Positions 8,540 through 58,613 of a stretch of 64,000 nucleotides of DNA are shown piece after piece. This stretch comes from Mobula hypostoma (taxonomy: Eukaryota), in contig NC_086101.1 in assembly GCF_963921235.1 (NCBI RefSeq), positions 22,134,001-22,198,000 of the forward strand, in the 5' to 3' direction. The position numbers and the translations under genes are program-made. Each line of letters starts with the position of its first letter. Positions within the stretch are counted from its first letter, which is position 1. The notes beneath the pieces are model-generated. The model had not been told where the DNA came from and ran no database searches. It worked only from the letters and a program-made list of their open reading frames with translations.

Positions 8540-9270
8540 GTTACCCCGGTTTTACGCAATGCCTGTCCCCACCCCATTTAGATGGGGCGTTGGCTGGTCG
8601 AGCAGAGTTTTCAAGGATCGCTGAAGTTTAGAAGACGGCAAATGAATTATTTGTTCGCGTTTTGTTTTTGTTCGCTGTTAAGGCTGGGCAGCGCTGGAGG
8701 TAAGAAATAATGTTCAGGGAATGGGAAGCGCGCTTCACGGTGATTCTCGGTGCCGCCGCAGGAGCGCTGAGGCCGAGGTGGCTCGGCATCCAGAACGGCT
8801 CGTACCTTATGGGCCCTGGAAGCTGCTGCCATCACGTTTGAGAACTTCGAGAGAAAGCCTGGTTTCTAATTCTGCGTCCACGCGTCGCCGTTTATAGTGT
8901 TGCTGTGACGCGCACCTCTCCCAAACTTCGCGTCGCGGCAACGCAAACGTAACAACTGTGATTGGTCCGCAAGTCACCCTACGCTGCAGTAGCTTCCCAG
9001 TGGGCGACTGAAGGACTGGGGAGGAATTCTGGCTGCAAAGCTTTCCATAAAGCTTTACAGACCTCCGAAATTATGGAGGACACATTTCGCACGAAAAAAG
9101 ACGCTCTCGTCTTGTTCACCCCGAGACTACCATGACCATGAAGCATTGCGCGGGCAGGTGAGTGCGCATGCGTGATATGCGCGAATTGCCGAGCGACGCA
9201 GACTCACTAACGCACAAGTATAAATACTCACTACGCGTAAGCCACTTGCGTAGTTTACGGCGTTCAGTTA
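8540..9270. promoter_or_regulatory. CpG island / probable promoter region
   Basis: Sharp CpG enrichment in non-repetitive sequence; ATTGG (reverse CCAAT) at 8961-8965; NRF1-like TGCGCATGCG at 9163-9172; contains the signal-peptide exon. Confidence 0.7.
8642..8699 (+). CDS. Exon 1 (signal peptide) of IgV-5TM receptor gene: MNYLFAFCFCSLLRLGSAG
   Basis: Hydrophobic 19-aa leader ending GSAG; strong donor GAG|GTAAGA in phase 1, matching the phase-1 IgV exons; an in-frame upstream ATG at 8582 is also possible. Confidence 0.75.
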
Positions 9271-9355
9271 AGGCTGCAGATGCTGAAAATTCAAGCAACA
9301 CACATCAAAGTTGCTGGTGAACGCAGCAGGCCAGGCAGCATCTCTAGGAAGAGGT

Positions 9356-9393
9356 GCAGTCGACGTTTCGGGCCGAGACCCTTCGTCAGGACT
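9356..9393 (-). ncRNA. Minimal type I hammerhead ribozyme motif
   Basis: Minus strand reads agtc-CTGACGA-agggtctcggccc-GAAAC-GTC-gact: intact core, stem I agtc/gact, GUC cleavage triplet. Confidence 0.65.
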
Positions 9394-11435
9394 AACTGAA
9401 GGAAGAGTTAGTAAGAGATTTGAAAGTGGGAGGGAGAGGGGGAGATCCAAAATGATAGGAGAAGACAGGAGAGGGAGGGATGGAGCCAAGAGCTGGACAG
9501 GTGATAGGCAAAAGGGATATGAGAGGATCATGGGACAGGAGGTCCGGGAAGAAAGACTGGGGGGGGGGAACCCAGAGGATGGGCAAGGGATATATTCAGA
9601 GGGACAGAGGGAGAAAAAAGAGAGTGAGAGAAAGAATGTGTGTATAAAAATAAATAACAGATGGGGTACGAGGGTGAGGTGGGGTATTAACGGAAGTTAG
9701 AGAAGTCAAAGTTCATGCCATCAGGTTGGAGGCTACCCGGATAGAATACAAGGTGTTGTTCCTCCAACCTGAGTGTGGCTTCATCTTTACAGTAGAGGAG
9801 GCCGTGGATAGACATATCAGAATGGGAATGGGATGTGGAATTAAAATGTGTGGCCACTGGAAGATCCTGCTTTCTCTGGCGGACAGAGCGTAGGTGTTCA
9901 GTGAAATGATCTCCCAGTCTGCATCGGGTCTCGCCAATATATAGAAGGCCACATCGGGAGCACCGGACGCAGTATATCACCCCAGCTGACTCACAGGTGA
10001 AGTGTCGCCTCACCTGGAAGGACTGTCTGGGGCCCTGAATGGTGGTAAGGGAGGAAGTGTAAGGGCATGTGTAGCACTTGTTCTGCTTACAAGGATAAGT
10101 GCCAGGAGGGAGATCAGTGGGGAGGGACAAATGGACAAGGGAGTCGCATAGGGAGTGATCCCTGTGGAAGGTTGGAGGAGGGGAGGGAAAGATGTGCTTA
10201 GTGGTGGGATCCTGTTGGAGGTGGCGGAAGTTACGGAGAATTATTTTTTGGACCCGGAGGCTGTTGGGGTGGTAGGTGAGGACCAGGGGAACCCTATTCC
10301 TAGTGGGATGGCGGGAGGATGGAGTGAGAGCAGATGTGCATGAAATGGGGGAGATGCATTTGAGAGCAGAGTTGATGGTGGAGGAAGGGAAGCCCCTTTC
10401 TTGAAAAAAAAGGTGGACATCTCCCTTGTCCTAGAATGAAAAGCCTCTTCCTGAGAGCAGATGCCGCGGAGACGGAGGAATTGCGAGAAGGGGATGGCAT
10501 TTTTGCAAGAGACAGGGTGAGAAGAGAAATAGTCCAGATAGCTGTGAGAGTCAGTAGGCTTATAGTAGACATCAGTAGATAAGCTGTCTCCAGAGATAGA
10601 GACAGAAAGATCTAGAAAGGGAAGGGAGGTGTCAGAAATGGATCAGGTAAACTTGAGGGCAGGGTGAAAGTTGGAGGCAGAGTTAATAAAGTCAACGAGC
10701 TCAGTATGCGTGCAGGAAGCAGCGCCAATGCAGACGTCGATGTAGCGAAGGAAAAGTGGGGGACAGATACCAGAATAGGTTCGGAACATAGATTGTTCAA
10801 CAAAGCCAACAAAAAGGCAGGCATAGCTAGGACCCATGCGGGTGCCCATAGCTACACCTTTAGTTTGGAGAAAGTGGGAGGAGCCAAAGGCGAAATTATT
10901 AAGAGTAAGGACTAATTCCGCTAGACGGAGCAGAGTGGTGGTAGAGGGGAACTGATTAGGTCTGGAATCCAAAAAGAAGCGGAGAGCTTTGAGACCTTCC
11001 TGATGGGGGATGGAAGTATATAGGGACTGGACATCCATGGTGAAAATAAAGCGGTGGGGGCCAGGGAACTTAAAATCATCGAAAAGTTTAAGAGCGTGAG
11101 AAGTGTCATGAACATAGGTAGGAAGGGATTGAACAAGGGGGGATAAAACCATGTCGAGGTATGCAGAAATGAGTTCAGTGGGGCAGGAGCAAGCTGAGAC
11201 AATAGGTCGGCCAGGACAGGCAGGTTTGTGGATCTTGGGTAGGAGGTAGAAACAGGAAGTGCGAGGTGTGTGAACTATAAGGTTGGTAGCAGTGGACGGG
11301 AGATCCCCTGAGCGGATAAAGTGGGTGATGGTGTGGGAGACAATGGCCCGGTGCTCCTTAGTGAGGTCACGATTGAGGGGTAAATAAGAGGAGGTATCCG
11401 CGAGTTGTCGCTGTGCCTCAGCAAGGTAGAGGTCA

Positions 11436-11776
11436 AATGCACGGGGATCTCATTGAAACCCATCGAATGTTGAAAGGACTAGATAAGGTGTAAGTGGCGA
11501 GGATGTTTCCTCTAGTGGGAGTATCCAGAACTAAAGAGCACAGCCTCAAAATTGGGCGGGGGGGGGGCGACCTTTTAGAACAGAAGTGAAGAGGAATTTT
11601 TTTAGCCAAAGAATGATGAATCTGTGGGATGCAGTGGAGTCCAAGTTGGTGGACAGATGTAAAGTGGATTCCTGATTAGTTGGGGCATCAAGCTATCAGG
11701 GATCAGCCATGGTGAAATGGTGGAGTGGACTTGATGGGCTGAATGGCCTAATTCTGCTCCTATGTCTTACGATCTT
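11436..11776 (+). mobile_element. CR1 3' fragment inserted in the Penelope element
   Basis: ggggatctcattgaaacc...ttctgctcctatgtctta; removing it rejoins Penelope gtagaggtc|agtgtgccagac. Confidence 0.75.
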
Positions 11777-13010: not shown

Positions 13011-16000
13011 CAGGGCCGGATTAAGCTAGTGCAGGGCCCTAAATTTTTAAAAAATGCACATAAGTATTAAAACATAAATTATTTACTTGCATAGTAAAGT
13101 AATTAATTTTTCTCATTTGATATACAGCCAGATAATACGATGAATGTCTGACACTTCAGTAGTAGTATTACTTACACATAGGTATCAATTTCAAATGTCA
13201 AAAATAACAAAACTACAATTTAAAAGTTATGTTATCTAGGTTTAGCATGAGCAAATTTGTTGATGATACTGGAAATGTCTATATCACGCAGAAGTTCATG
13301 TTCAATGCTCATTAGAGTGAGATTGTTCAATCTGTTTTGACCCATAGTGCTCCTTAGTGCATTTTTAATCCTTTTCAGTTTTGAAAATGAGCGTTCTCCA
13401 CTGCATTTGGTCACCATGAGTGACAAATAGATGCACAAGGCATTTTCTACATTTGGAAAACATGACTCCAAAGAATTGTCAGTTATCAAACGGTACAACC
13501 GTAACTCTACAAGGTCTTGTTTGGTGCCAATATGAGAAGCAAGATCAGTTTTCAACAGTTCAGTAAGCTACACAAATTCTTCATCAAGACTTTCTTCCAG
13601 ATCTTCCGGATATGATTTAATAAGATTTGATGACCTCTTTACAATCTCTTCAGGTGTAAACAATGGTAACTGATGAAGGAATTCAAAAACACCATTCACC
13701 TTTAGATAAGCTTTCTGCCTTTTTGACAGGGCAGAAAGCAAGCTGTCAATAATGGCAAAAAATGTTCAGCTTTTAAACTTCTGAGAAGGCGTTTGAGATT
13801 CAATAAGTGGATCAAGAGTGCTGGAACTACTGAAATCATCATACGCGCGATTTTGCTTGTGTTTTCTTCAAGTTTGCTGTTGATAATCTTCACACTTAGT
13901 CAGATCCTTGGCTTTTTGCTCAATGTCTAAAAAAGTAGACTGCATAGCTTGAATATATCCATGCAAGGATTCATAGAGTGCACAAGCTGTGTTCAAGTCT
14001 TGGCCAGAAGATTGCAAAGAAGCACTGGTCATTTGAAAACACTGTAATACTTGATCCCACAATATGACCAATATTCCTGTTTCCAACTTCATCATGGTTG
14101 AAAGTAGTCCATGAGCCTGTTGTCAACACCCTGCCTTCTGATCATTGTTATTTGAAATGTCATCCAAGACTTGTTTTATTGCAGAAAAGCTGTGTAAGAG
14201 TGCTTTTGTTGCATCTGCACAAGCTGACCACCTGCTCTGAACATACTGTATGCCAACGTAAGTGAACTTGAGACCAGGTATCTGGAGGCTTTGCTCATTA
14301 CAGCCGGGGACTTTAACCAAGCCAACCTTAGAAAAGCGCTGCCAAAGTTATACCAACATGTCTCCTGCCCCACTAGAGGCCCGAATATACTTAACCACTG
14401 CTACACAGCAGTCAAGGATGCCTACCATTCCGTCCCACGACCTCACTTCGGAAAATCGGACCATTAGGCCGTACTCCTCCTCCCGGCTTACAAACAGAAA
14501 CTGAACCGGGAGGTCACGGTGTCAAAAGTAGTGTCGCGATGGACGGAGGAAACGGATGAGGTCCTCCGTGACTGTTTTGAATCGGTGGACTGGTTAGTAT
14601 TCAAGGACTCGGCAGCTAACCTCGATGAGTATGCCTCAGCTGTCACAGACTTTATTTGGAAATGCATGGAGGACTGTGTGTCTCGCAAGACGATCCGGGT
14701 ATTCCCTAACTGGAAACCTTGGATGAATTATGAGGTCAAGTCCCTTTTGAAGGCTAGAGCTGCAGCTTTTAGGTCCGGGGATGCCAGTCGCTACACGGAA
14801 TCCAGGCGTGAACTCCGGAAAGCCATTAAGGGCGCCAAGAGGCAATATCAAACCAAGTTGGAAGCCCAGGCTAACCAGAGGGATGTCGGTAGACTATGGC
14901 AGGGTCTAAATGAGATCACTGGGCACAAAGAAAAGGCTGGGAATATCAATAACTGTGGCACTTCTCTTCCTGATGAACTTAACGTATTCTATGCAAGATT
15001 CAAAAAGGAGCATCCCGCTCCCTCCGGATGAACCGGACCTGGTGACATCGAGATTCATCATCACAGAGGAGGATGTTAGAAGGGCCTTCCTGAAGATAAA
15101 TCCAAGGAAGGCGACGGGCCCAGATGGCGTCCCAGGACAGGTTCTCTGGGCCTGTGCAAGTGAGCTAGCTGGAATATTTGCTGACATCTTCAACTGCTCC
15201 TTGCTTCAGTCTAAGATCCCCTTGTGTTTTAAGAAGGCAACGATGATCCCGGTGCCGAAGAAGAGCAAGGTGGCATGCCCAAATGACTATCGACCTGTGG
15301 CTCTGACATCAATTGCGATGAAGTGCTTTGAGCGATTGGTTATGGCACACATCAACCACAGCCTACTGTTCAACCTCGACGCTTTGCAATTCGCCTACTG
15401 GAGCAACAGGTCAACAGCAGATGCCATCTCTCTGGCCCTACATTCCTCTTTGGAACATTTGTAGAACAGACGTATATGTAAGGCTCCTTTTTATTGATTA
15501 CAGCTCTGCCTTTAATACCATCATTCCAAATAAACTGATCCCTAAGCTCTGGAACCTAGGTCTTAGCACTCAGATCTGCAGCTGGATCTTCAACTTCCTC
15601 ACAGACAGGACCCAGGCTGTAAAAATAGGGGACAAGCTCTTCTCTACAATTACTCTGAGCACCGGTGCCCCACAAGGCTGTGTACTTAGCCCCCTGCTGT
15701 ACTCACTGTACACCCATGATTGTGCAGCCAAGTTCCAATCGAACTCAATATATAAGTTTGCTGATGACACCACAATTGTAGGCCATATCTTGGGTAATGA
15801 TGAGTTTGAGTACAGAGAGGAAATTAAGAACCTGGTGGCATGGTGTGAAGACAATAACCTATCCCTCAACGTCAGCAAGACGAAGGAATTGGTTGTTGAC
15901 TTCAGAAGGAGTAGCGGCCCGCACAACCCTATTTACATCGGTGGTGCGCAAGTGGAACAGGTCAAAAGCTTTAAGATCCTCGGGGTCAATATCACAAATG

Positions 16001-17351
16001 ACCTGACTTGGTCCAACCAAGCAGAGTTCACTGCCAAGATGGCCCACCAGCACCTTTACTTCCTGAGAAAGCTAAAGAAATTTGGCCTGTCCCCTAAAAC
16101 CCTCACTAATTTTTATAGATGCACCATAGAAAGCATTCTTCTAAGGTGTATCACAACCTGGTATGGAAGTTGTCCTGTCCAAGACCAGAAGAAGCTGCAG
16201 AAGATCGTGAACACAGCCCAGCACATCACACAAACCAATCTTCTGTCCTTGGACTCACTTTACACCGCACGCTGTCGGAGCAGTGCTGCCAAGATAATCA
16301 AGGACACGACCCATCCAGCCAACACACTTTTTGTCCGTCTTCCCTCCGGGAGAAGACTCAGGAGCTTGAAGACTCGTACGGCCAGATTTGGGAACAGCTT
16401 CTTTCCAACTGTGATAAGACTGCTGAACGGATCCTGACCCAAATCTGGGCTGTACCCTCCAAATATCCGGACCTACCTCTCAGTTTTTTGCACAAGCTTA
16501 CGTTCCCTTTTCTATTTTCTATTTATGATTCATAATTTAAATTTTTACTATTTACTATCGATTTGTACTCCAGGGAGCGCAAAGTGCAGAATCAAATGTC
16601 GCTGTGATAATTGCTCTAGTATCAATTGTTTGGCAACAATAAAGTATCTGACATTCTTTTCACAATGGGCAAATGAGCACCACCATCAGATAATGCAGCA
16701 GAAAGGAGATCCCACCGATAAGTAGAAGCAGAAAAAAATATGTACAGGCTTTCTACAAATTGAAAGAAAATTAATGCTTCTTGACAACATTCAGCAGCAC
16801 ATTTTCCAACCAAATTAGTGAATGTGCAAAACATGGAATGTAATCTGCACACTCATTCAGCTCTTTAATTCGTGATTGTAAGCCGCTATACTTGCCACTC
16901 ATGTTGCTGGCATTGTCATAACTTTGACCACGGCAGTCTTTTCTATCAATGTCATTTTCCCTTAAAAAGTCAAGTAAACTATGAGCGAGCTGTTCAGCAC
17001 TATGCCCTTCCATATCCAAAAACTTCACAAATCTGTTAACTGGTCCAGCTGGCAGAACATAGCGCACAATCAAAGTCAGTGGCGTACCCTCCAGCAGCGT
17101 AACAGCACATGCTGTAGTGGCTTGGGAGCATGGGAGATAGCACAAAGGTCACCACAACACAGCAAGGAACCAACACAAGCCTGCACACACATACCATGCA
17201 GCATGCAGCTCCCCCGACATGAAAACAACAACGTTGCCAGATCGTTGTGAGAATACAGTGAGATGTCGATTTCACCAGACTGCAGCTTGCAAGCATTTAC
17301 TGTGGGGCCAGTAGCATATGCTACTTTTGCTACTAGGTTAATCCGGCACTA
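13011..17351 (-). mobile_element. hAT DNA transposon (ZMYM1-like/Tip100-type transposase), decayed and internally deleted
   Basis: TIRs cagggccggattaa / ttaatccggcacta; 8-bp TSD cctctcat / cctctgat; transposase motifs GQSYDNASNMSG, IPCFAHSL, KRMSDT|RWSAC and dimerisation domain CSGERSFSKLKRIKN.LRSTM...RLNNL. Confidence 0.9.
14235..16645 (+). mobile_element. Rex1/Babar LINE, 5'-truncated, nested in hAT
   Basis: APE tail (GDFN...SDH); RT motifs [42 protein letters not shown] (15328-16437); a few stops and frameshifts. Confidence 0.9.
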
Positions 17352-17551
17352 CCTCTGATGCTGCTTGACCTGTTGAACACGTCCAATATTTTCTGTTTTA
17401 ATTTTAGACCTGTGTCTAGTGCAAATGCCCCTTATTGAGAGGAGTTCTTATGTCTACTTCATTTATCACCTTGCCTTGACCCCTGCCCACATTTCACCCT
17501 TTTCAAGGATGCAACTTAATTGATTTTTTTTTTTCCTTCCTTAATGCCCAG

Positions 17552-17854
17552 CTAAAACGATGCAAGTTCAGGGTGCCCTTGGTTCGAATGTTTTGTTGGA
17601 GTCTGGAAACAGTGCTGATCTCCACGGTCGTGAAGTTGTGTGGGAGTTCACCAGCAGCAATGGAACCGAGTTCACCATTTTGGATGTTGGACCAAACCAC
17701 CCAGAAGTGAAACCAAACAAACATTTTAAAGATTTGATTTTTAATCTGTCCACTGGAGATTTATTATTAAGCAATTTAAAGACAAGTGACCAGGGAAATT
17801 ATACTGTCAGCATTGATGGTCAGGAGCGGAGAAAAATAGAATTGCGAATCTTTG
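17552..17854 (+). CDS. IgV-like exon copy 1 (cysteine-free V-set domain)
   Basis: Polypyrimidine + cccag acceptor; TTTG|GTGAGT donor; phase 1-1; 303 bp open; C-strand W (VVWEF), LLLSNLKTSDQGNY motif, no B/F cysteines. Confidence 0.9.
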
Positions 17855-18203
17855 GTGAGTAGCTTGTGTCACTGAGCATTTATAGTACGGTTGGATGCTG
17901 TTCAGCTTGGACAAGTTCTCATGAACAAACACAAATTGCTGCAGGAATTCTGCACATCAGACAGCATCTATGGAGAGGAATGATACTGATGAAGGGTCTC
18001 AGCTTGAAACGTTGACTGTTCATTCCTGTCCTTAACTGCAGCCTGACCCGCTGAGTTCAGGTATGTGAGTGTTACTCTGGATTTCCATAAGATATAGGAG
18101 CAGAAATAGGCCATTCAGCCCATTGAGTCTGCTCTCCCATTTCACCATGACTGACCCATTTTCCTCTCGACTCCACTCTCCTGCTTCTCCCATAACCTAC
18201 ATG

Positions 18204-20838
18204 GGAAAGAGGTGGGGGTGTGGCACTGTTGATTAGATTGGCTGCAGAAAAGGTGGACGCCATGGAGGGATTGTCTACGGAGTCTCTGTGGGTGGAGGTT
18301 AGGAACAAGAAAGGGTCAATAACTTTACTGGGTGTTTTTTATAGACCACCCAATATTAACAGGGATATAGAGGAGCAGGTAGGGAAACAGATCTTGGAAA
18401 GGTGTAATAATAACAGAGTTGTCGTGATGGGAGATTTTCATTTCCCAAATATCGATTGGCATCTCCCTAGAGCAAGGAGTTTAGATGGGGTGGAGCTTGT
18501 TAGGTGTGTTCAGGAAGGTTTCTTGATGCAATATGTAGATAGGCCTACAAGAGGAGAGGCTGTACTTGATTTGGTATTGGGAAATGAACCTGGTCAGGTG
18601 TCAGATCTCTCAGTGGGAGAGCATTTTGGAGATAGTGATCATAATTCTATCCCTTTTACAGTAGCATTGGAGAGAGATAGGAACAGACATGTTAGAAAAT
18701 TGTTTAATTGGAGTAAGGGGAATTTTGAGGCTACCAGGCAGGAAATTGGAGGCTTAAATTGGAAACAGACGTTCTCAGGGAAAAGTATGGAAGAAATGTG
18801 GCAAATATTCAGGGGATATTTGTGTGGAGTTCTGCATAGGTACGTTCCAATGAGACAGGGAAGTTATGGTAGGGTACGAGAACTGTGGTGTACAAAGGCT
18901 GTAATAAATCTAGTCAAGAAGAAAAGAAAAGCTTACAAAACGTTCAGAGAGCTAGGTAATGTTAGAGATCTAGAAGATTATGAGGCTAATAGGTAGGAGC
19001 TTAAGAAAGAAATTAGGAGAGCCAGAAGGGGCCATGAGAAGGCCTTGGCGGGCAGGATTAAAGAAAATCCCAAGGTATTCTACAAGTATGTGAAGAGCAA
19101 GAGGATAAGACGTGAAAGAATAGGACCTATCAAGTGTGACAGTGGGAAAGTGTGTATGGAACTGGAGGAAATAGCAGAGGTACTTAATGAATACTTTACT
19201 TCAGTATTCACTGTGGAAAAGGATCTTGGTGATTGTAGTGCTGACTTGCAGCAGACTGAAAAGCTTGAGCATGTAGATATTAAGAAAGAGGATGTGCTGG
19301 AGCTTTTGGAAAGCATCAAGTTGGATAAGTCGCCGGGACCGGATGAGATGTACCCCAGGCTGCTCTGGGAGGTGAGGGAGGAAATTGCTGAGCCTCTGGT
19401 GATGATATTTGCTTCATCAATGGGGATGGGAGAGGTTCCGGAGGATTGGACGGTTTTGGATGTTGTTCCTTTATTCAAGAAAGGGAGTAGAGATAGCCCA
19501 GGAAATTATAGACCAGTGAGTCTTACCTCAGTGGTTGGTAAGTTGATGGAGAAGATCCTGAGAGGCAGGATTTATGAACATTTGGAGAGGTATAATATGA
19601 TTAGGAGTAGTCAGCATGGTTTTGTCAAGGGCAGGTCGTGCCTTGCGAGCCTGATTGAATTTTTTGAGGACGTGACTGAACACATTGATGGAGGAAGAGC
19701 AGTAGATGTAGTGTATATGGATTTCAGCAAGGCATTTGATAAGGTAGCCTACGCCAGGCTTATTGAGAAAGTAAGGAGGCATGGGATCCAAGGGGACATT
19801 GCTTTGTGGATCCAGAACTGGCTTGCCCACAGAAGGCAAAGAGTGGTTGTGGGCGGGTCATATTCTGCATGGAGGTTGGTCACCAGTGGAGTGCCTCAGG
19901 GATCTGTTCTGGATGACCTGGATGAGGAAGTGGAGGGATGGGTTAGTAAGTTTGCTGATGACACAAAGGTTGGAGATGTTGTAGATAGTGTGGAGGGCTG
20001 TCAGAGGTTACAGTGGGACATTGATAGGATGCAAAACTGGGCTAAGAAGTGGCAGATGGAGTTCAACCCAGATAAATGTGAAGTGGTTCATTTTGGTTGG
20101 TCAAATATGATGGCAGAATATAAAATGGTAAGACTCTTGGCAGTGTGGAGGATCAGAGGGATCTTGGGGTCCGAGTCCATAGGACGCTCAAAGCAGCTGT
20201 GCAGGGTGACTCTGTGGTTAAGAAGACATACGGTGTATTGGCCTTCATCAATCGTGGAATTGAATTTAGGAGCCAAGAGGTAATGTTGCAGCTATATAGG
20301 ACCCTGGTCAGACCCCACTTGGAGTACTGAGCTCAGTTCCAGTCGCCTCACTATAGGAAGGATGTGGAAGCCATAGCAAGGGTGCAGAGGAGATTTACAA
20401 GGATGTTCCCTGGATTGGGGAGCATTCCTTATGAGAATAGGTTGAGTGAAATCGGACTTTTCTCCTTGGAGCGACGGAGGATGAGAGGTGACCTGATAGA
20501 GGAGTATAAGATGATGAGAGGCATTGATCGTGTGCATAGTCAGAGGCTTTTTCCCATGGCTGAAATGGTTGCCACAAGAGGGCATAGGTTTAAGGTACTG
20601 GGAAGTAAGTACAGAGGAGATGTCAGAGGTAAGTTTTTTACTCAGAGAGTGGTGAGTGCATGGAATGGGCTGCCAGCAATGTTGGTGGAGGCGGATATGA
20701 TAGGGTCTTTTAAGAGACTTTTAGATAGTTACATGGAGCTTAGTAAAATAGAGGGCTAGTAATTTCTAAGGTAAGGGCATGTTCAGTACAACTCTGTGGG
20801 CCGAAGGGCCTGCATTGTGCTGTAGGTTTTCCATGTTT
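18204..20838 (+). mobile_element. CR1 LINE ORF2 (APE tail + RT), 5'-truncated
   Basis: GVFYRPPN, MGDF, GDSDHN, DKSPGPD, QHGFVKG, DFSKAFDKV, GVPQGSVL, KFADDTK; splits host sequence ctacatg|ctaatcaagaac that is intact in copies 2 and 3. Confidence 0.92.
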
Positions 20839-20855
20839 CTAATCAAGAACCTATC

Positions 20856-22611: not shown

Positions 22612-23807
22612 CAGTATTAGCCTGCACTTTTATACCTTCTTCCAAAGTGTGTGCCCAAACACTTCCCGACACAGTATTCAATCTGCCACCTCTTTGCCCA
22701 TTCTTCTAATCTAAGGCCTCCTGCAGCCTCTCTGCTTCCTCAACACTACCTACCCCTCCATCCATCTTCATATCATCCACAAACTTGGTCATAAAATGAT
22801 CAATTTCATCATCCAAATCGTTGACATGCAATGTAGAAGAATCGGTCCCAACACAGACCCCTGTGGAATACCACTAGTCACCAGCATCCAATCCAAAAAA
22901 AGGCTCCCTTTATTCCCACACATAGCCTCCTGCCACTCAGCCAATGCTAGAACCTTTCCTGTGATACCCTGGGCTCTTAACTTGTTTAGCAGCTTTACGT
23001 GTGACATCTTGTCAAAGGCCTTCTGAAAATTCAAGTACACAACATCCACCAATTCTCTTCATCTATCCTACTTATTATTCAAAGAATTCCAACATATTTG
23101 TCATGCCAGATTTTCCCTTAAGGAGGCCATGCTGACTTTAGCCTATTTTGTCGTGTGCCTTCAAATTCCCTGAAACTACATCCCCAACAATCGAATTCAA
23201 CACTTTCCCAGCCACTCAGGTCAGGGAAACTGGCCTATAATTTCCTTTCTTCTGCCTCCCTCCCTGTTTGAAGAGTGGAGTGACTTTTCAATTTTCCTTC
23301 CTCCAAATCCATGCCAGAATCGATTTCTTGAAAGTTCATTACTAATGCCTCCATAATCTCTTCAGCTACCTCTTTTTGAACCCTGGGGTATTGTTTGGCA
23401 GGACCAGGTGACTTTAGACATTTCTGTTTCCCAAACACCATCTCCCTTGTAATAGCAACTGCACTCACTTCTGTCCCTTGATACTCTTGAACTTCTGGCA
23501 TACTGGTGTCTTCCCCAGTGAAGACTGATAGAAAATACTTGCTCGGTTCGACCACCTTTCCCTTGTCCCGCATTATTTTCCAATGGTCCAATCCTACTAT
23601 TGCCTCCTTTTATATATCTGAAAATATATTGGTATTTTAGGCTAGCTTAGCTACATATTTCATCGTTCCCCCCCCCCACAGCAAAACTGTTTTTTTCAGT
23701 TGCCTTCTGTTTAGTTATATATATCACCTTGCCTTGAACCCTGCCCACATTTCACCCTTTTCAAGGATGCAACATAACTGATTTTTTTTTCCTTCCTTAA
23801 TGCCCAG

Positions 23808-24113
23808 CAGAGATGAAGCAAGTTGAGGGTGCCCTTGGTTCAAATGTTTCGTTGGAGTCTGGAAGCAGTGCCAATCTCCATGGTCGTGAAGTTGTGTGGA
23901 AGTTCACTAGCAACAATGGAACTGAGTTCACCATTTTGGATGTTGGACCAAACCACCCAGAAGTGAAACCAAACAAATATTTTGAAGATCGTTTGATTTT
24001 TAATCTGTCCACTGGAGATTTATTATTAAGCAATTTAAAGACAAGTGACCAGGGAAATTATACTATCAGCGTTAATGGTCGAAAGCTGAGGAAAATAGAT
24101 TTGCGAATCTTTG
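23808..24113 (+). CDS. IgV-like exon copy 2
   Basis: NAGNAG acceptor cccag|cag; GTGAGT donor; phase 1-1; open frame MKQVEGALG...KIDLRIF. Confidence 0.9.
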
Positions 24114-26303
24114 GTGAGTAGCTTGTGTCACTGAGCATTTATATTAGGATTGGATGCTGTTCAGCTTGGACAAGTTCTCATGAACAGACACAAATTGCTG
24201 CAGGAATTCTGCACATCAGACAGCATCTATGGAGAGGAATGATACTGATGAAGGGTCTCAGATTGAAACGTCGCCTGTTCATTCCTCTCCATAAATGCAG
24301 CCTGACCTGCTGAGTTCCTCCAGCACCAGTGTATGTGAGTGTTACTCTGGATTTCCATAAGACATAGGAGCAGAAATAGGCCATTCAGCCCATTGAGTCT
24401 GCTCTCCCATTTCACCATGACTGACCCATTTCCCTCTCGACTCCATTCTTCTGATTCTCCCATAACCTACATGCTCCAACTAATCAAGAACCTATCAACC
24501 TACGCCTTAATTACATCCAGTGACCTGGCCTGCACAGCTGCCAGTGTCAAGAAATTCCACAGATTCACCTCCCTCTGGGAAAAGAGCTTCCCCCTCTCTC
24601 TGTTCTAAATGGATGTCCTTCTATCTTGAGGCTGTGTCTTCTGGTCATAGGTTCCCCCACCAAAGTAAACAGCCTCTTCACATCTGCACTATCTCGGCCT
24701 TTCAGTATTCAATGAGATTCCCCCACCACCCCCAGTCCTTCTCAATTCCAGCGAGTACAGGCCCTGAGCCTTCAATCGCTACTCTTTCCCTCCTGGAATC
24801 ATTCTCGTGAACCTACTCCAATCCCTGTCCAGTATCAGCATGTTCTTTCTTGGATAAGGTGCCCAAAACTGCTCACACCACTCTGAGGCCTCACCCTTGC
24901 CTTATACAGGCCTCAGCATTACATCTTTGTGTTTATATTGTAGTCCTCTTGAAATGAATGCTAACATTTCATTTGCCTTCCTCACAACTGATTCAACCTG
25001 CATATTAACCTTTTGGGAATCCTACATGAGGATTTCCAAATCCCATTGCACCTCAGATTTTTGAATCTTCTTCCCATTTAGAAAGTAGTCTACACTTTTA
25101 TTCCTTCTACCAAAGTGTGTGCCCATACACATCCCGACACAGTATTCAATCTGCCGCCTCTTTGCCCATTCTTCTAATCTGTCTAACTCCTCCTGCAGCC
25201 TCCCTGCTTCCTCAACACTACCTACCCCTCCATCTATCTTCATATCATCAGCAAACTTGGTCGCAAAAATGGTCAATTCCATTATCCGAATTGTTGACAT
25301 ACAATGTAGAAGAATCGGTCCCAACACAGACCCCTATGGAACACCACTAGTCACCAGCAGCCAATCCAAAAAAAGTTTCCCTTTATTCCCACACTTAGCC
25401 TCCTGCCACTCAGCCAATGCTAGAACCTTTCCTGTGATACCCTGGGCGCTTATCTTGTTAAGCAGCTTTATGTGTGACATCTTGTCAAAGGCCTTCTGAA
25501 AATCCAAGTACACAACATCCACCAATTCTCTTCGTCTATCCTACTTATTATTCAAAGAATTCCAACATATTTGTCATGCCAGCTTTTCTCTTAAGGAAGC
25601 TATGGTGACTTTAGCCTATTTTGTCAAGTGCCTCCAAGTTCCCCGAAATTACATCCTCGACAATCGAATCCAACACTTTCCCAGCCACTCAGGTCAGGCT
25701 AACTGGCCTATAATTTCCTTCCTGCTGCCTGCCTCCCTCCCTGTTTGAAGGGTGGAGTGACTTTTCAATTTTCCTGTCCTCCAAATCCATGCCAGAATCG
25801 ATTTCTTGAAAGTTCATTACTAACGCCTCCATAATCTCTTCAGCTACCTCTTTTCGAACCCTGGGGTGTTGTCTGGCAGGACCAAATGACTTTAGACCTT
25901 TCTGTTTCCCAAACACCATCTCCCTTGTAATAGCAACTGCACTCACTTTTACCCCTTGATACTCTTGAACTTCTGGCATACTGGTGTCTTCCCCAGTGAA
26001 GACTGATAGAAAATACTCACTCGGTTCGTCCACCTTTCCCTTGTCCCGCATTACTATCTCTCCAGCGTCATTTTCCAATGGTCCAATCCTACTATTGCCT
26101 CCTTTTATATATCTGAAAATATATTGGTATTTTAGGCCAGCTTAGCTACATATTTCATCTTCCCCCGCCCCCCCCAGCAAAACTTTTTTTTAGTTGCCTT
26201 CTGTTTAGTTATGTATATCACCTTGCCTTGAACCCTGCCCACATTTCACCCTTTTCAAGGATGCAACATAACTGATTTTTTTTCCTTCCTTAATGCCCAA
26301 CAG

Positions 26304-26606
26304 AGATGAAGCGAGTTCAGGGTGTACTTGGTGAAAATGTTTTGTTGGAGTCTGGAAACAGTGCTGATCTCCACGGTCATGAAGTTGTGTGGAAGTTCAC
26401 TAGCAACAATGGAACCGAGTTCACCATTTTGGATGTTGGACCAAACCACCCAGAAGAGAAACCAAACAAATATTTTAAAGATCGTTTAAATTTTAATCTG
26501 TCCACTGGAGATTTATTATTAAGCAATTTAAAGACAAGTGACCAGGGAAATTATACTATCAGCGTTAATGGTCTGAAGCTGAGAAAAATAGATTTGCGAA
26601 TCTTTG
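26304..26606 (+). CDS. IgV-like exon copy 3
   Basis: cccaacag acceptor; GTGAGT donor; phase 1-1; open frame MKRVQGVLG...KIDLRIF. Confidence 0.9.
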
Positions 26607-26849
26607 GTGAGTAGCTTGTGTCACTGAGCGTTTATATTAGGATTGGATGCTGTTCAGCTTGGACAAGTTCTCATGAACAGACACAAATTGCTGCAGGAAT
26701 TCTGCACATCAGACAGCATCTATGGAGAGGAATGATACTGATGAAGGGTCTCAGGTTGAAATGTCGCCTGTTCATTCCTCTCTATAAATGCAGCCTGACC
26801 TGCTGAGTTCCTCCAGCACCAGTGTATGTGAGTGTTACTCTGGATTTCC

Positions 26850-29490
26850 ATAAGACATAGGAGCAGAAATAGGCCATTCAGCCTGTTGAGTCTGCTCTCC
26901 CATTTCCCTCTCGACTCCATTCTTCTGCTTCTCCCATAACCTACATGCTCCAACTAATCAAGAACCTATCAACCTACTCCTTAAATGCATCCAGTGACCT
27001 GGGCTGCACAGCTGCCAGTGGCAAGAAATTCCACAGATTCACCTCCCTCTGGGAAAAGAGCTTCCCCCTCTCTCTGTTCTAAATGGATGTCCTTCTTGAG
27101 GCTGTTTCTTCTGGTCATAGGTTCCCCCACCAAAGTAAACAGCCTCTTCACATCTGCACTATCTCGGCCTTTCAGTATTCAATGAGATTCCCCCACCACC
27201 CCCAGTCCTTCTCAATTCCAGCGAGTACAGGCCCTGAGCCTTCAATCGCCACTCTTTCCCTCCTGGAATCATTCTCGTGAACCTACTCCAATCCCTGTCC
27301 AGTATCAGCATGTTCTTTCTTGGATAAGGTGCCCAAAACTGCTCACACCACTCTGAGGCCTCACCCTTGCCTTATACAGGCCTCAGCATTACATCTTTGT
27401 GTTTATATTGTAGTCCTCTTGAAATGAATGCTAACATTTCATTTGCCTTCCTCACAACTGATTCAACCTGCATATTAACCTTTTGGGAATCTTACATGAG
27501 GATTCCCAAATCCCATTGCACCTCAGATTTTTGAATCTTCTTCCCATTTAGAAAGTAGTCTACACTTTTATTCCTTCTACCAAAGTGTGTGCCCATACAC
27601 ATCCCGACACAGTATTCAATCTGCCGCCTCTTTGCCCATTCTTCTAATCTGTCTAACTCCTCCTGCAGCCTCCCTGCTTCCTCAACACTACCTACCCCTC
27701 CATCTATCTTCATATCATCAGCAAACTTGGTCGCAAAGATGATCAATTCCATTATCCGAATTGTTGACATACAATGTAGAAGAATCGGTCCCAACACAGA
27801 CCCCTATGGAACACCACTAGTCACCAGCAGCCAATCCAAAAAAAGTTTCCCTTTATTCCCACACTTAGCCTCCTGCCACTCAGCCAATGCTAGAACCTTT
27901 CCTGTGATACCCTGGGCGCTTATCTTGTTTAGCAGCTTTACGTGTGACATCTTGTCAAAGGCCTTCTGAAAATCCAAGTACACAACATCCACCAATTCTC
28001 TTCGTCTATCCTACTTATTATTCAAAGAATTCCAACAGATTTGTCATGCCAGTTTTTCCCTTAAGGAAGCTATGGTGACTTTAGCCTATTTTGTCAAGTG
28101 CCTCCAAGTTCCCCGAAATTACATCCCCGACAATCGAATCTAACACTTTCCCAGCCACTCAGGTCAGGCGAACTGGCCTATATTTTCCTTTATTCTGTCT
28201 TCCTCCCTTCTTGAAGAGTAGAGCGACATTTGTAATTTCCAGTCCTCCAAATCCGTGCCAGAATCTATTGTTTCTTGAAAGGTCATTAATTGTGCCTCTA
28301 TAATCACCAGCTACCTCTTTTCGAACCCTGGGGTATTATCTGGGAGGTCTGGGTGACTTTAGTCTTTTCTGTTTCCCAAACACCATCTCCCTTGTAATAG
28401 CAACTGCACTCACTTTTGCCCCTTGACACTCTTGAACTTCCGGCATTGTCTTCCACAGTGTAGACTGATACAAAATGCTCACTCGGTTCATCGACCATTT
28501 CCTTGTCCTACATTACTATCTCTCCAGTGTCATTTTCCAGTGGTCTAATATCTACTCTTGCCTCTCTTTATATATCTGAAAATATATCGGTATTTTTAGC
28601 TAGCTTACCAACATATTTCATCTTCCCCCTCCCAATGTTCTTTTAAGTTGCCTTCTGTTTAAATATCTCTCAATTCTCGAACTTTCCCTCTAATTTTTGC
28701 TCTACTAGATGCTATTTCTGTTGCTTTAATGTTGGCTTTGACTTCACTTGTCAGCCACAGTTGCATCTTTCTACCTTAAGAACACTTCCTCTTCTTTGGG
28801 ATGTATCTATCCTGTGTCTTCCGAATTGCTCCTGGAAACTCCAGCCTTTGCTGCTCTGCCATCATCCCTGCTAGTGTTCCCTTCCAAAGAACTTTGCCCA
28901 GCTCCTCTCTCATGCCTCTATAATTCTCTTCACTCCACTATAATACTGATATATCATATTTGAGCTTCTCCCTCCTAAATTGCAGGATGAATTCTATCAT
29001 ATTATGATCTGTTTCCTAAGGGTTCTTTTACGTTCAGCTCCCTAATCATATCCAGTACATTACACAACACCTAATCCAGAATTGCTGATCCCCCAGAGGC
29101 TTAACCACAAGCTGCTCCAAAAACCCATCTTGGAGGCATTCCACAAATTCCCTCTCTTGGGATCCAGAGTCAACTTGATTTTCCCAATCTATCTGCATAT
29201 TGAAATCTCTTGTGACAAAAGTAACATTACCTTTTTGACATGCTTTTTCTATCTCCTACTGTAATTTGTACACCTTGTTTTGGCTATAGTTCGAAATCCC
29301 GTAAGTAACTCCCATCAGGGTCTTCTTACCCTTGCAGTTTCTTCACTCTACCTACAAAGATTCTACATCTTCTGGTCGTATGTCACCTCCTTCTAAAGAT
29401 GTGATTTAATTTCTTACCAGCAGAGCCACTCCTCCTCCTCTGCCTACATGCCTGTCCTTTCAAGAGACTGTGTATCTTTAGGTATTAAGC
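26850..29490 (-). mobile_element. Old decayed CR1 (the duplicated unit ends inside it; continues into the APE region after copy 3)
   Basis: KFADD, DFQKAFDK and GDF-like motifs in broken minus ORFs; partial copies at 22613-23715 and 24355-26210. Confidence 0.8.
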
Positions 29491-38985: not shown

Positions 38986-39037
38986 TCTCTGCCTCGCTGT
39001 TCCATGTTTGGTTAACCAGACTTGTGTTTAATTGCAG

Positions 39038-39154
39038 GCCCTTCCGCTGATGACATTCCGATGATTGTTCTGTCGATCTCAGCCCTGGTGTTTTCTTCAG
39101 TTTATCTTATTGCAGTTTTTCCTCTGAACATCTGGAAGTGTAAATCAAACAGAG
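39038..39154 (+). CDS. TM1 exon: GPSADDIPMIVLSISALVFSSVYLIAVFPLNIWKCKSNR
   Basis: gtttaattgcag acceptor; AGAG|GTATTC donor; phase 1-1; about 23-aa hydrophobic run followed by basic residues. Confidence 0.8.
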
Positions 39155-41464: not shown

Positions 41465-41566
41465 AATTACCAAAGTACAAATGGTGGAAGTATGTCCTGT
41501 ATCTATGTAACATCCTGCAACTTCCTGTCATCCTCGCTGCGTTCAGTTGCTCGATTCATTTTAAAG
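41465..41566 (+). CDS. TM2 exon: LPKYKWWKYVLYLCNILQLPVILAAFSCSIHFK
   Basis: ccttttctccatag acceptor; AAAG|GTTTGT donor; phase 1-1; basic loop then hydrophobic helix. Confidence 0.8.
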
Positions 41567-43632: not shown

Positions 43633-43752
43633 ATTCTTGTTTACTAAATGTGGCTACAGCATGCATTGCAGTTCTATTGTTTACTTTGCCTGTACCATTT
43701 ATCACTCAAGTACCTAAATGCCGGCGAATTCGCAGATTCAGCACCAGTATCG
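43633..43752 (+). CDS. TM3 exon: SCLLNVATACIAVLLFTLPVPFITQVPKCRRIRRFSTSI
   Basis: Branch-like CTAAC at about 43604, tgtttgctctag acceptor, ATCG|GTGAGA donor; phase 1-1; hydrophobic helix then an Arg-rich loop. Confidence 0.8.
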
Positions 43753-43839: not shown

Positions 43840-43923
43840 TTATTTCAGTTACTCAGCTTGCACTGCACGTCATCGTGGTTGGCACCTCAATTGCTTTCTT
43901 CATCAAAGACATCCATCAGGAAA
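43840..43923 (+). CDS. TM4 exon: ISVTQLALHVIVVGTSIAFFIKDIHQE
   Basis: tcctctgtctctgacag acceptor after an 87-bp intron; GAAA|GTGAGT donor; phase 1-1. Confidence 0.8.
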
Positions 43924-52663: not shown

Positions 52664-52756
52664 AACAAAGATATACCTTCCACACTTGGAATGTGCTCAT
52701 CGCCTCAGTGGTCGAATGTACAGTCAGCTTCATCGTGGCCTCAATGTTCCATTACT
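52664..52756 (+). CDS. TM5 exon: QRYTFHTWNVLIASVVECTVSFIVASMFHY
   Basis: ctttgctgttctatattttcag acceptor; TACT|GTAAGT donor; phase 1-1. Confidence 0.8.
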
Positions 52757-55046
52757 GTAAGTATCAAAATGATCAGAACCCTTCAGATCACAAACCAGAT
52801 GCTGGAAATCAAAGCAGCACACACAAAATGCTGGAGGAACTCAGTCATAATGAAAACTTTCCCCAGGGTCCCACTGCCCCTTCAGGTTGGGGTTATGGGG
52901 AAACTTCCAGCACGTTGTTCCTTCCCTGTCCCTGACTGGCTGCTGTCGTTCAGGAGGAGCTCTGGCCTGTATTTTCCCTGCTGCTACTGGAAGCTCCTCA
53001 TGGAGTCATTGGCGTTTTTGTCATAAATAGACTACAAGACGTAGGAGCAGTTTAGGCTATTCAGCCCATTGAGTCTGCTCTGCCACTCCATCAGGGCTAA
53101 TTTACTATCTCTCTCAACCCCATTCTCCTGCCTTTCTCAGTAAAATACCACAATTACACACACATTAAGCAAGCATAGGAAAAGTTAATCTGCGTAAAAT
53201 AACAATATTACACACTAGTCTAACACTTCCCTAGTCATTTCTTGCCAATCAAGCGTTGCAATAGAGTTGTATCCCATCTCACCCTGATATCAGGGGATCA
53301 CTTTTGCCTTTTGGGATTAGAGTATGATTTTCATTAAGGTCCTGCCTGACCTCATCAGAATTCCACAGTGAAGAAAGACACAGTATCAATCAAAAGTATT
53401 GTCAAAACACCCAAAATGTTTTTATTGCCTAGATCCTCTTTATGGACTTCGCTGAGTATTTTCTATTTATAGTGCAGAGGGCTCTTGGTTCTATTCTGTG
53501 AGACGGTGGTAAAACTAATTTTTTGGCCCGATAAGCCTGAATCCTGAAACAGGGCAAGGGGAAAATTAAAATCTGGTGAATTAAATAAAAGAATCCAACG
53601 TAAATACTGATGAATATAAAACTGGAGGATTTCACCGTCTTTCAAGAAAAAAATCTGCCGTCCTTACGGGAGACTGCTGGAAATCTGCAGGAATGCGGAG
53701 CTCCAGAATTTCTTGCTGCGCCTGTCCCCGGATGCTGCGTGGGCCTCAAACGTGAATTACTTCTGTCTCCACAGAGGCTTCCTGACCTGCAACTGCCCTA
53801 AGCCATTCCTATTTTTATTGCACCTTTTAAAATAATTTCAAATTGGTACTTCAGTAATATAGTTTTAGTTTTGATGTTTCAGAGTGATGGGGGACGGACT
53901 GTGGTGTTAAGGTTTCCTGGGATAATGTGGACGAGGCTTGATTTATCCTGTTTTATCACTGTATCCACAGCTTTGCACAGCCGGATTTGCCTTTGGGTCC
54001 GGAAAGGGTACAGCTGGATGACTGGTGAGTGCAGGCGGAGTTTTCCATTCCTTCCCACCCCCCCCCCACCTTGACCTCCCCCAGGGAATATCTGGCCTGT
54101 GCAATTCCCCTCCCTCCCCCCCCCACCCTACCCCAGTGAATATCCGGCCTGTGCCATTCCGGATGGTCAAATTCTTGGGGTAAGTGAAGGTGAAGTCCAG
54201 GGGCTTTTGTCATTTCTCTTTTGGAGATTCCGTGTTGGGGAGCGAATTCAAGAGGTTTTCCATCTCGTAGAGTCGGATCAATCACTGGAGGGAAGGGGTG
54301 GGTGAAACCCGGTGCCGTGTCCATCAGGGGAACATCTGGGAGGAGGGCAGGGACGGAGGATTCCAGAAAGTGCCAGATAAATGAGCCGAAGGGCACTTTG
54401 CACCTGTGGTCTCTCCTGTGTTGGGACTTGGTGTCACTCACATTCCCGGGGTAGGAAGGTGAAAGGAACCTTGCCCATTGGGAGCAGATATGGGAAACGA
54501 GTTGCTGTCTGATTGTCTGCCCCTTCATTTTAAGTATTTGGACATTCAGCACACAGTCCACAATTTTCAATCATTCAGCTGGGAGCAGGCAATGGGAATG
54601 TGATGGCAGACCCTGTCTTGGGGAAAGCCATGATCTTTAAAGGCAAGTAACAAGAAGGCACATTTCCTGGCCTGGCTCCCAGTGCAGGACGGGAGCCTGT
54701 GTCCCGATTCTGCGCTCTCTGAGTGCAGGAAATTCCATCAGTCAGAAGAATGGGGGAGCAAAATTTCCTGTTTACTCCATGTTAAACACCTCCAGGAAGT
54801 TACTGTGGGAGCCTGTGCATAAAGTAACTCTTCCATTGATTGTTAACCCTTTCCCACTGTGTGACCCGGGACCTTCCCCAGTCTGTAAACTGGAGATCCT
54901 GTCTGCACTCTCTATTAAGTCACTAAGAAGGGGTCAAATTCTCAAGAGTAAATGAGAGAGGATTGAAACTCTTTTAGTGACTGTTGGTGAGACAAGTCAT
55001 TGAAATATTGAATATCCATAGTTATTGATTATTTTCTTTATTATAG

Positions 55047-55084
55047 GCAGAAATAAAAGCAACACTAATGAAAAAGGACCGCAG
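55047..55084 (+). CDS. Cytoplasmic tail exon 1: (C)RNKSNTNEKGPQ
   Basis: ttattttctttattatag acceptor; CAG|GTATTT donor; phase 1 to 0, bridging TM5 to the terminal exon. Confidence 0.7.
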
Positions 55085-57140: not shown

Positions 57141-57190
57141 CAGTCTGTGCAAAGGTCTTCATATGTGCCTAAGACTTTTGCACAGTACTG
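57141..57190. mobile_element. 50-bp Tc1/mariner-type mini-MITE
   Basis: cagtctgtgcaaaggtctt...aagacttttgcacagtactg, preceded by TA. Confidence 0.55.
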
Positions 57191-57382
57191 CACGGATTCT
57201 CCCACTGTCTACACAGCTCCTGTGTCTGAACACGTTGTCTATGAAGGTAACAGAGATGTACTACCATCTTGACCTTCTTTCACAGTCTCTCAGTTTGTAA
57301 ATAGATGTTGCTTTGGTCTTCTGTGCTTTCATATCTCCCTCCTTCACTTACTCTCAGAATTAGAATCAGAATCAATGACATG

Positions 57383-57920
57383 CACTCAGTGGCCACTTTA
57401 TTATGTATGCCTGTACTACTGCTTGTTAATCAAATATCTAATCAGCCAGTCCTGTGGTAGCAACTCAACGTATAAAAGCATGCAGACATGGTCGAGAAGT
57501 TTATTTACTGTTCAGACTGAACATCGGAATGGGGGAAGAAATGTGATCTAAGTGACTTTGTGGAATGACTGTCGGTGCCAGATGGGGTGGATTGAGTATC
57601 ACAGAAACTGCTGATCTCCTGGGATTTTCAGACATTATCTAGATCTTAAAGAGAATGGTATGCAAAAAGAAAAACCCAGCATCCAGTGAGCGGCAGTTCT
57701 GTAGCCATAAATGCCTTGTTAATGAGAGAGGTCAGAGGAGAATGTCAAGCTGACAGAAAGGCAACAGCAACTCAGATGACCACATATGACAACAGTGGTG
57801 TGTAGAAGAGCACCTCTGATTGCAGACCACGTTAAAATCTTGAAGTGGGTGGGGTACCATGAACATACTCAGTGGCCATTTTATTTGGTACAGGAGGTAC
57901 CCTATAAAGAGGCTGCTAAG
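57383..57920. mobile_element. Non-autonomous Tc1-like element
   Basis: Starts cactcagtggccactttatt; the same terminal motif recurs at about 57865 and, inverted, at about 45830-45850. Confidence 0.45.
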
Positions 57921-58544
57921 GTGTGTCTTGTGGAATTCGTTCTTTTTCAGCAGTAGTGCAAGACATTAAAAAAAATCATAAAAGTGACAATAAGAAATAT
58001 AAAAAATAATTAAGTAATGTAGAAAGTGAGGTCACGGGTTTGTGGCCTGTTCAGAAATTTGATGGCAGAGGGAAGGAAGTTGTTCCTAAGATGTGAGTGT
58101 GTGTCTTCATGCTCCTGTACCTCCTCCCTGATGGTCCCAATGAGAAGAGAGCATGTCCTGGGTGGTGGTGGTGGACCTCAGCCAACTTCTTGAAGCATCG
58201 CTTATTGAAGTTGTCCTCTGATGGGGTAGCTAGTGCCCATGATGGAGCTGATTGAGTTTACGATATACGACAGCCTTTTCTGATCACATCCATTGGCACC
58301 CCCATTCCAGACGGCAATGCAACCAGGCAGAATATTCTCCCCGGTACACCTGTTGAAATTTGCTAGAGTCTTTGGTGATGTACCAAATCTCCACAGACTC
58401 CTAATGAAGTATAGCCACTGACCTGCCTTCTTTGTGATTGCGCCAATGTGTTAGGTCAAGGATAGATCCTCAGAATTACTGACACCCTGGAACGTGAAGC
58501 TGATCAGTTTCTGCATTTTACAATTTCACTTTCTGTGTTTTCAG

Positions 58545-58613
58545 AATGCTGAAGAACTGCAGAGTTTCACAACCTTTCCCACAGAAGATGCTGGATATGT
58601 ACATTCCGATTAG
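58545..58613 (+). CDS. Terminal coding exon: NAEELQSFTTFPTEDAGYVHSD*
   Basis: tttcactttctgtgttttcag acceptor; phase 0 matches the preceding exon; ends in TAG. Confidence 0.7.
   Translation, partial: NAEELQSFTTFPTEDAGYVHSD

Follow-up and report, generated by a model that had tools for sequence, protein, structure and literature searches.

CD47 and the CD2/SLAM proteins

CD47, the "don't eat me" protein, is also known as integrin-associated protein and couples to integrins. Proteins of the CD2/SLAM family cross the membrane once or are attached by a lipid anchor, and tyrosine switch motifs are present in SLAM receptors. CD47 has been described as the sole five-pass receptor in the immune system, with a unique fold (PMC8410850). 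In human CD47, a C15-C245 disulfide links the immunoglobulin (Ig) domain to the loop between transmembrane (TM) helices TM4 and TM5; this pair and G191, at the top of helix III, are among the seven residues common to human and viral CD47, and conservation in CD47 clusters at the outer part of the helix bundle (PMC8410850). The tail is built from small, alternatively used exons (PMC10902115). Here we describe a gene of the lesser devil ray, Mobula hypostoma, LOC134346677, which lies on the forward strand within a window (the whole stretch of DNA analysed) of 64,000 nucleotides (nt; RefSeq assembly GCF_963921235.1, contig NC_086101.1, positions 22,134,001 to 22,198,000; 44.6% G+C, zero N). All coordinates below count from the first letter of this window.

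It is probable that LOC134346677 combines a stack of variable-type (V) Ig domains of the CD2/CD58/SLAM type with a five-pass membrane anchor and serves as a receptor in cell-cell recognition or adhesion, the anchor being either related to CD47 or convergent with it. The gene is assigned to an undescribed shark-and-ray family with CD2/SLAM-like Ig domains on a five-pass anchor, a build otherwise known only from CD47. In the part of the literature that was covered, no described shark or ray family of Ig-plus-five-pass proteins was found.

Gene structure and annotation

The locus carries the public name "uncharacterized protein", and two of its RefSeq isoforms, X2 and X3, were retrieved. Splice-aware exact mapping showed that 11 exons in the window encode the whole of isoform X3 (P0153, 466 amino acids) and 10 exons the whole of isoform X2 (P0152, 499 amino acids), each with 0 mismatches. 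Such an exon-by-exon match is beyond chance: the gene is real and already in public annotation, yet it is unnamed and uncharacterised. The preliminary description of the window had called the gene "hidden", which does not hold, as the NCBI pipeline had already annotated it; the same description's term "little-characterised" agrees with the public label, and the chain of exons that it joined in one frame matches the RefSeq isoforms exactly, apart from the corrections given below. The supported exons are the following:

8582-8699, + strand: coding exon 1, signal peptide; annotated ATG at 8582, ends in phase 1; exact mapping of P0153 and P0152
17552-17854, + strand: V1 cassette, cysteine-free V-set domain, 303 nt, phase 1-1; in X2 and X3; V-set expectation value (E) 3e-6
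23811-24113, + strand: V2 cassette, phase 1-1; tandem NAGNAG acceptor, of which the annotated isoforms use the AG at 23809-23810
26304-26606, + strand: V3 cassette, phase 1-1; in X2, skipped in X3; V-set E 8e-7, Receptor_2B4 E 0.03
39038-39154, + strand: TM1 exon, phase 1-1; exact mapping; tblastn matches with ray orthologues at 73-93%
41465-41566, + strand: TM2 exon, phase 1-1; exact mapping; tblastn matches with ray orthologues
43633-43752, + strand: TM3 exon, phase 1-1; in X3, skipped together with TM4 in X2
43840-43923, + strand: TM4 exon, phase 1-1; in X3, skipped together with TM3 in X2
52664-52756, + strand: TM5 exon, phase 1-1; exact mapping
53971-54024, + strand: tail mini-exon a, 54 nt; exact mapping; absent in some orthologous isoforms
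55047-55084, + strand: tail mini-exon b, 38 nt, phase 1 to phase 0; exact mapping
58545-58613, + strand: tail exon c, 69 nt, with the stop codon; exact mapping

All eight exons for which the preliminary description had given coordinates have AG/GT borders (the last ends in a stop codon) and are open in the frames assigned to them, and the borders and frames of TM1 to TM5 are identical to those of the RefSeq exons. The V exons and all five TM exons are of phase 1-1. For the leader, proposed at 8642-8699, the exon and its donor were borne out and the start was not: the annotated ATG, at 8582, is 60 nt further upstream and immediately follows an in-frame TAG (8579), both ATGs share one frame and one common hydrophobic leader, and the N-terminus from ATG 8582 is kept in the orthologue of M. 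birostris. Between the leader and TM1 there are three open stretches of 105-106 codons with a protein identity of 82-87%, flanked by a polypyrimidine tract and acceptor upstream and by a G/GTGAGT donor downstream. Exact mapping confirmed them as the three V exons that had been postulated, with the acceptors of V2 and V3 moved 3 nt further downstream. In V3, the first AG of the NAGNAG acceptor, still present in V2, is now AA (26299-26303), and the AG 3 nt downstream remains; the annotated transcripts start both V2 and V3 from this downstream AG.

At the 3' end, the tail exons at 55047-55084 and 58545-58613 had been placed correctly and the 54-nt exon at 53971-54024 had been missed. An "optional loop" exon proposed between TM2 and TM3 has to be dropped, since it is used by none of the annotated isoforms or orthologues; dozens of chance AG...GT open stretches occur between these two exons, and none is backed by an isoform or orthologue. 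When joined, the 12 supported exons encode 567 amino acids and not the 555 first calculated for the full product. The 87-nt intron between TM3 and TM4 contains in-frame stops, and the first polyA-like signals are located 1.1 kb downstream of the last coding exon.

Searched in full by HMMER with the V3 exon, a set of 1.84 billion representative proteins returned 453 matches. The closest entries are each named "uncharacterized protein" and come from Mobula birostris, M. hypostoma (X2 and X3), Hemitrygon akajei, Hypanus sabinus and Pristis pectinata, and many of the best single- or double-V matches have 4-6 predicted membrane helices.

V cassettes

The V exons are carried by repeated segments, which self-BLAST resolved as follows:

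22618-28633, no strand assigned: tandem duplication with a unit of about 2.47 kb and 93% identity, carrying V2 and V3
17461-18203: third copy of the cassette core, holding V1

The exons of V2 and V3 share 93.5% identity and their flanks 97.9%, and those of V1 and V2 share 91.1% and their flanks 95.2%. The V exons are less alike than their own flanks, and the ratios of nonsynonymous to synonymous substitution (dN/dS) among the V copies range from 0.48 to 1.06, as would be expected if selection on the V domains were relaxed or diversifying. Isoform X3 uses V1 and V2, and isoform X2 uses all three; among the other rays, M. birostris also has a one-V form, H. akajei a three-V form and P. pectinata a V-V-C2 arrangement. 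A relic C2 exon was looked for throughout the window, including the long V3-TM1 intron, and none was found.

Each V domain contains 3-4 N-glycosylation sequons (10 in total, all within the V domains). As the preliminary description had pointed out for the V domains, all three V exons are cysteine-free, and the mature ectodomain contains no cysteine at all. In Pfam searches, the V exons scored as V-set at or slightly above threshold, with sub-threshold matches to Receptor_2B4 and SLAM; the best values for LOC134346677 were E 0.03 and 14.9 bits for Receptor_2B4 (PF11465, cut-off 21) and E 0.05 for SLAM (PF06214), so that the protein stays below the Pfam cut-offs for both families. Two shark paralogues pass the Receptor_2B4 cut-off (P0005, 31.2 bits; P0048, 24.5 bits). 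A sequence search of solved structures with the V domain gave weak V-type matches, including SLAMF6, CD48/CD2 and 2B4.

An AlphaFold2 (AF2) model of V2 with the membrane part gave the V domain a predicted local distance difference test score (pLDDT) of 83-90. Many V domains fit this model in Foldseek, the tightest being CD58 (root-mean-square deviation 2.3-2.6 Å, template-modelling score by target up to 0.86), followed by 2B4 (2.5 Å) and SLAM (2.7 Å); CD47 was not among the best 50 Foldseek matches of the V domain. The V-set score, the weak 2B4 and SLAM matches and these nearest shapes agree with the earlier suggestion of a V domain of the CD2/SLAM type. For the three-V forms P0152 and P0155, the precomputed annotation also lists a Pfam family, PF28299.

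Membrane topology and splice variants

Kyte-Doolittle analysis in 19-residue windows gave one hydrophobic peak for each of the five TM exons (1.95-2.44), and the AF2 models contain five long helices. Lys and Arg together number 5 in the loop after TM1, 5 in the loop after TM3 and 6 in the tail, against 1 in the loop after TM2 and 3 in the loop after TM4. From hydropathy and positive-inside charges, LOC134346677 is thus predicted to be a five-span surface protein with its N-terminus outside and its C-terminus inside, as had been proposed on the same grounds. The overall build put forward at the outset, namely V domains, five membrane spans and a short tail of several exons, likewise stands, with the exact RefSeq match, the five hydropathy peaks and tail exons of 54, 38 and 69 nt.

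Isoform X2 joins position 41566 directly to 52664 and so omits the TM3-TM4 hairpin, retaining the reading frame and the predicted N-out/C-in topology. The same skip occurs in isoform P0154 of M. birostris, and it may represent a regulated three-pass form. By alignment, the 54-nt tail exon is shared by P0153, P0006 and P0155 but missing from P0151 and P0001. The only tail Tyr close to the C-terminus, encoded by the last exon, is replaced by Ser in M. birostris; the tail has no tyrosine motif that is conserved even between the two Mobula species. According to the annotated models, alternative splicing would alter the number and identity of the V domains, the presence of the TM3-TM4 hairpin and the tail.

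Orthologues and the elasmobranch family

Orthologues were found in four other rays, M. birostris, Hemitrygon akajei, Hypanus sabinus and Pristis pectinata. All coding exons are conserved in the first three; in the sawfish P. pectinata the V exons are conserved, and the five-pass part matches at the protein level (36% identity, E 7e-36). The two Mobula orthologues share 86% identity over the protein.

An iterated hidden Markov model of the five-pass part recovered 34 of 155 proteins, the 155 being the first proteins retrieved. Every five-pass member whose origin was looked up is from a shark or ray, the genera being Heptranchias, Mustelus, Pristiophorus, Scyliorhinus, Cetorhinus, Heterodontus, Rhincodon, Hemiscyllium, Chiloscyllium, Pristis, Hypanus, Hemitrygon and Mobula. 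Word-indexed searches with a mixed alignment (full-length first row, five-pass parts below) and then with an alignment of five-pass parts alone returned at least 9-10 proteins, all elasmobranch; these counts are a lower bound, and a taxonomic limit to elasmobranchs is not established by them. All retrieved relatives thus come from sharks or rays, in line with the receptor of cartilaginous fish proposed initially.

Most shark members combine V, C2 and five-pass parts, and some ray paralogues also have V and C2 domains. Two M. hypostoma paralogues, LOC134346683 and LOC134346685, are located on the chromosome-scale record that also carries LOC134346677. When 23 five-pass parts were placed in a maximum-likelihood tree, rays separated from sharks with 100/99 support and several lineages were resolved within each, a pattern of separate expansion per lineage; LOC134346677 grouped with its Mobula, Hypanus and Hemitrygon orthologues, with Pristis next. 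Together, these comparisons point to a shark-and-ray family in which V or V and C2 ectodomains sit on a common five-pass module; this family has expanded separately in sharks and in rays and appears to be fast-evolving.

Family members are labelled "uncharacterized" or, after their Ig domains, as HEPACAM-, CEACAM1-, contactin-, hemicentin- or VEGFR2-like. Automatic names of the HEPACAM, CEACAM and contactin type arise from Ig-domain similarity, and the HEPACAM-, CEACAM1- and contactin-like names are mislabels and not orthology calls.

In P0005, P0032, P0107 and other shark proteins, the tail carries a Y-x-S-V motif followed by D-P-D-E; some of these fit an inhibitory tyrosine motif (S-x-Y-x-x-V), which is absent from LOC134346677. 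The proteins P0009, P0010 and P0022 (from Mobula, Hypanus and Hemitrygon; 700-940 amino acids) contain 2-3 partial or full five-pass copies with 6-11 hydrophobic peaks, and may be either tandem genes that gene prediction has merged or genuine duplications of the module.

The recurrence of this architecture bears on whether the V and TM exons belong to one gene at all. If they were parts of different transcripts, the single gene would be an artefact of gene prediction, and it is true that the V3-TM1 intron spans 12.4 kb and is full of transposon remains, and that the supporting proteins are all pipeline predictions. However, gene models from at least 15 elasmobranch species and from more than one annotation source join V, with or without C2, to the five-pass part, and they do so in many paralogues. 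TM1 starts in phase 1 right after its acceptor, matching the phase of the V exons, and the window holds neither another membrane anchor for the V part nor the relic C2 exon mentioned above. We therefore regard separate transcripts as very improbable and continue to treat the V stack and the five-pass anchor as one protein.

Relationship of the five-pass module to CD47

The five-pass module may be a distant relative of CD47 or may have converged on its build; the two appear about equally likely, with at most a slight tilt to distant kinship, and CD47 kinship of this part is unproven. LOC134346677 was already thought not to be a simple CD47 orthologue, and the Pfam CD47 models indeed do not recognise it. 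Several results weigh against the reading proposed here. The CD47 TM region model (PF04549) gave no match at E ≤ 1 in 10 full-length members or at E ≤ 0.1 in 5 more, and none of 24 five-pass parts matched it at E up to 10. The CD47 V-set model (PF08204) did not match LOC134346677 or its ray orthologues at E ≤ 1, and searches of solved structures with a whole-family and a shark-only profile did not retrieve the CD47 chain. The fold of the five-pass model was compared with Swiss-Prot models, the PDB (Foldseek and a wide VIA-align search), viral models, AlphaFold clusters and the ESM Atlas; CD47 did not appear among the matches, which were weak ones to cytochrome b561 or to generic helical bundles. 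The Asp that LOC134346677 has in place of a family Gly in helix III (in both Mobula orthologues), its lack of a Cys in the TM4-TM5 loop and the status of isoforms X2 and X3 as pipeline-predicted models belong to the same side of the balance, as do the Atlas scores given below.

Weak PF08204 matches (E 0.002-0.09) were confined to the C2 domain that paralogues from sharks and the sawfish carry. Other Pfam matches of the five-pass parts were scattered and below threshold, and a Pfam search with single TM exons gave no match, the exons being too short. The fold results are weak evidence either way, because the five-pass models have low pLDDT (mean 64.5 alone, 45-60 in the two-domain model). Cytochrome b561 was rejected as a reading of the module: its fold has six helices, the family alignment contains none of its four conserved heme histidines, and the scores lie in the range common for helical bundles.

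An ESM Atlas feature search with the five-pass part of the M. birostris orthologue alone (no Ig domain in the query) ranked a CD47 cluster first, and a CD47 cluster also came first for a Mustelus member that is less than 20% identical to the M. birostris query; the scores of 0.64 and 0.67 are far below the level at which the tool is reliable and were rated as leads. The best-conserved positions of the family lie on the outer face of the bundle, with a W-x-x-x-E/K-G motif whose last residue is a near-invariant Gly at the outer end of helix III, and a Cys in the TM4-TM5 loop is conserved in most shark and some ray paralogues. This Gly and this Cys are placed like G191 and C245 of CD47, an equivalence by position in the topology and not by alignment with CD47. 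A separate case is P0088 of Hypanus sabinus (one V domain plus the five-pass part), which has one ectodomain Cys and one TM4-TM5 loop Cys, the arrangement expected for a CD47-like domain-to-loop disulfide, by a crude count for which the signal peptide was imprecisely removed. We tentatively entertain the idea, as somewhat doubtful, that the module is a true and very old relative of CD47 and that sharks and rays have kept an expanded, fast-evolving sister family with CD2/SLAM-type ectodomains.

An alternative scenario, to which we give nearly an even chance, is that the module is unrelated to CD47, having been recruited from another multi-pass gene or newly formed and joined to a CD2/SLAM/CEACAM-type ectodomain by exon shuffling, in which case the resemblance to CD47 would be convergence. 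The sequence and fold tests against CD47 were all negative, the V domain is of the CD2-family and not the CD47 type, and the phase 1-1 of all these exons makes shuffling easy. However, no other donor family was detected, given that the Pfam matches are sub-threshold and the b561 matches weak and devoid of heme histidines; moreover, the family retains a conserved Gly and Cys at key positions of CD47, and CD47 was twice the first Atlas match.

The loss of the helix III Gly and the loop Cys in LOC134346677 could also be taken as a sign that the gene has no function and is decaying, as one copy in a cluster with rapid turnover of genes, and the 86% identity of the Mobula orthologues, the dN/dS of up to about 1 between V copies and the lost first acceptor of V3 would point the same way. 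Yet 12 of 12 exons are open with intact splice sites, V3 retains a usable in-frame acceptor 3 nt downstream, and one-to-one orthologues of the same architecture exist in four other rays, including the sawfish. Decay is thus most unlikely, and a working receptor with a CD2/CD58/SLAM-type V stack on a five-pass anchor is the reading followed below.

Proposed function and significance

By analogy with the systems named above, we infer an immune or adhesion role. After removal of the signal peptide, LOC134346677 would expose 2-3 glycosylated, cysteine-free V domains outside the cell, and this stack could bind a partner on another cell in trans, as the V domains of the CD2 family do. The five-pass module would anchor the protein and might couple sideways to partner proteins, in the manner of CD47 with integrins, so that signalling would proceed through these partners via the five-pass part.

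If the anchor is related to CD47, the family bears on the origin of CD47, and the Ig-plus-five-pass design may once have been more widely used. Under such an old kinship, CD47 would not be the sole type of five-pass immune receptor; of a wider class, it alone would have survived in land vertebrates. With their exchangeable V cassettes, the ray genes could then form a polymorphic system of self/non-self recognition or a pathogen-driven one. For genome annotation, names such as "HEPACAM-like" or "contactin-like" are misleading when given to five-pass proteins. In addition, the locus offers a testable case in which exon cassettes set both the number of outer domains and the presence of a membrane helix pair.

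Repeats and mobile elements in the window

Intronic long open reading frames with endonuclease and reverse-transcriptase motifs, of the long interspersed nuclear element (LINE) type, occur on the + strand at 14228-16434, 18196-20756 and 35063-38760. One of them lies between V1 and V2, and a large part of the 12.4-kb V3-TM1 intron is taken up by another. Within the same intron, two adjoining open stretches at 33810-34438 (+ strand) look like the remnant of a Tc1/mariner-type transposase. The open stretches at 9287-9697 (+ strand) and 1194-1649 (- strand) encode a near-identical Gly/Arg/Glu-rich peptide, which suggests that two copies of one repeat element flank the first exon in inverted orientation.

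Comparison with known systems

HEPACAM/HEPACAM2, CEACAM1 and contactin, after which some family members have been named, resemble them in V- and C2-type Ig domains, but are single-pass or lipid-anchored, so that such names take no account of the five-pass module of this family. The likeness to the CD2/SLAM family (CD2, CD58, CD48, 2B4 and SLAM) and to the CEACAM N-domains concerns the ectodomain, with V-set domains that lack the canonical disulfide and are heavily N-glycosylated; the V and C2 ectodomain typical of CD2/SLAM proteins is seen in shark and some ray paralogues. LOC134346677 differs from the CD2/SLAM proteins in its five predicted spans and in having no C2 domain and no conserved tyrosine motif.

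With CD47 and the poxviral CD47-like proteins (OPG166/A38L type), LOC134346677 shares an Ig ectodomain at an N-terminus predicted to lie outside, five helices and a short tail of skippable exons, and, as in CD47, conservation within the module is highest on the extracellular face of the bundle. However, CD47 has one Ig domain, whereas LOC134346677 has 2-3 tandem V domains and the shark members V and C2. The V domains of LOC134346677 contain no Cys and can form neither the B-F disulfide nor the disulfide from ectodomain to loop. Finally, CD47 is a single conserved gene, whereas the elasmobranch family appears to consist of many fast-evolving genes.

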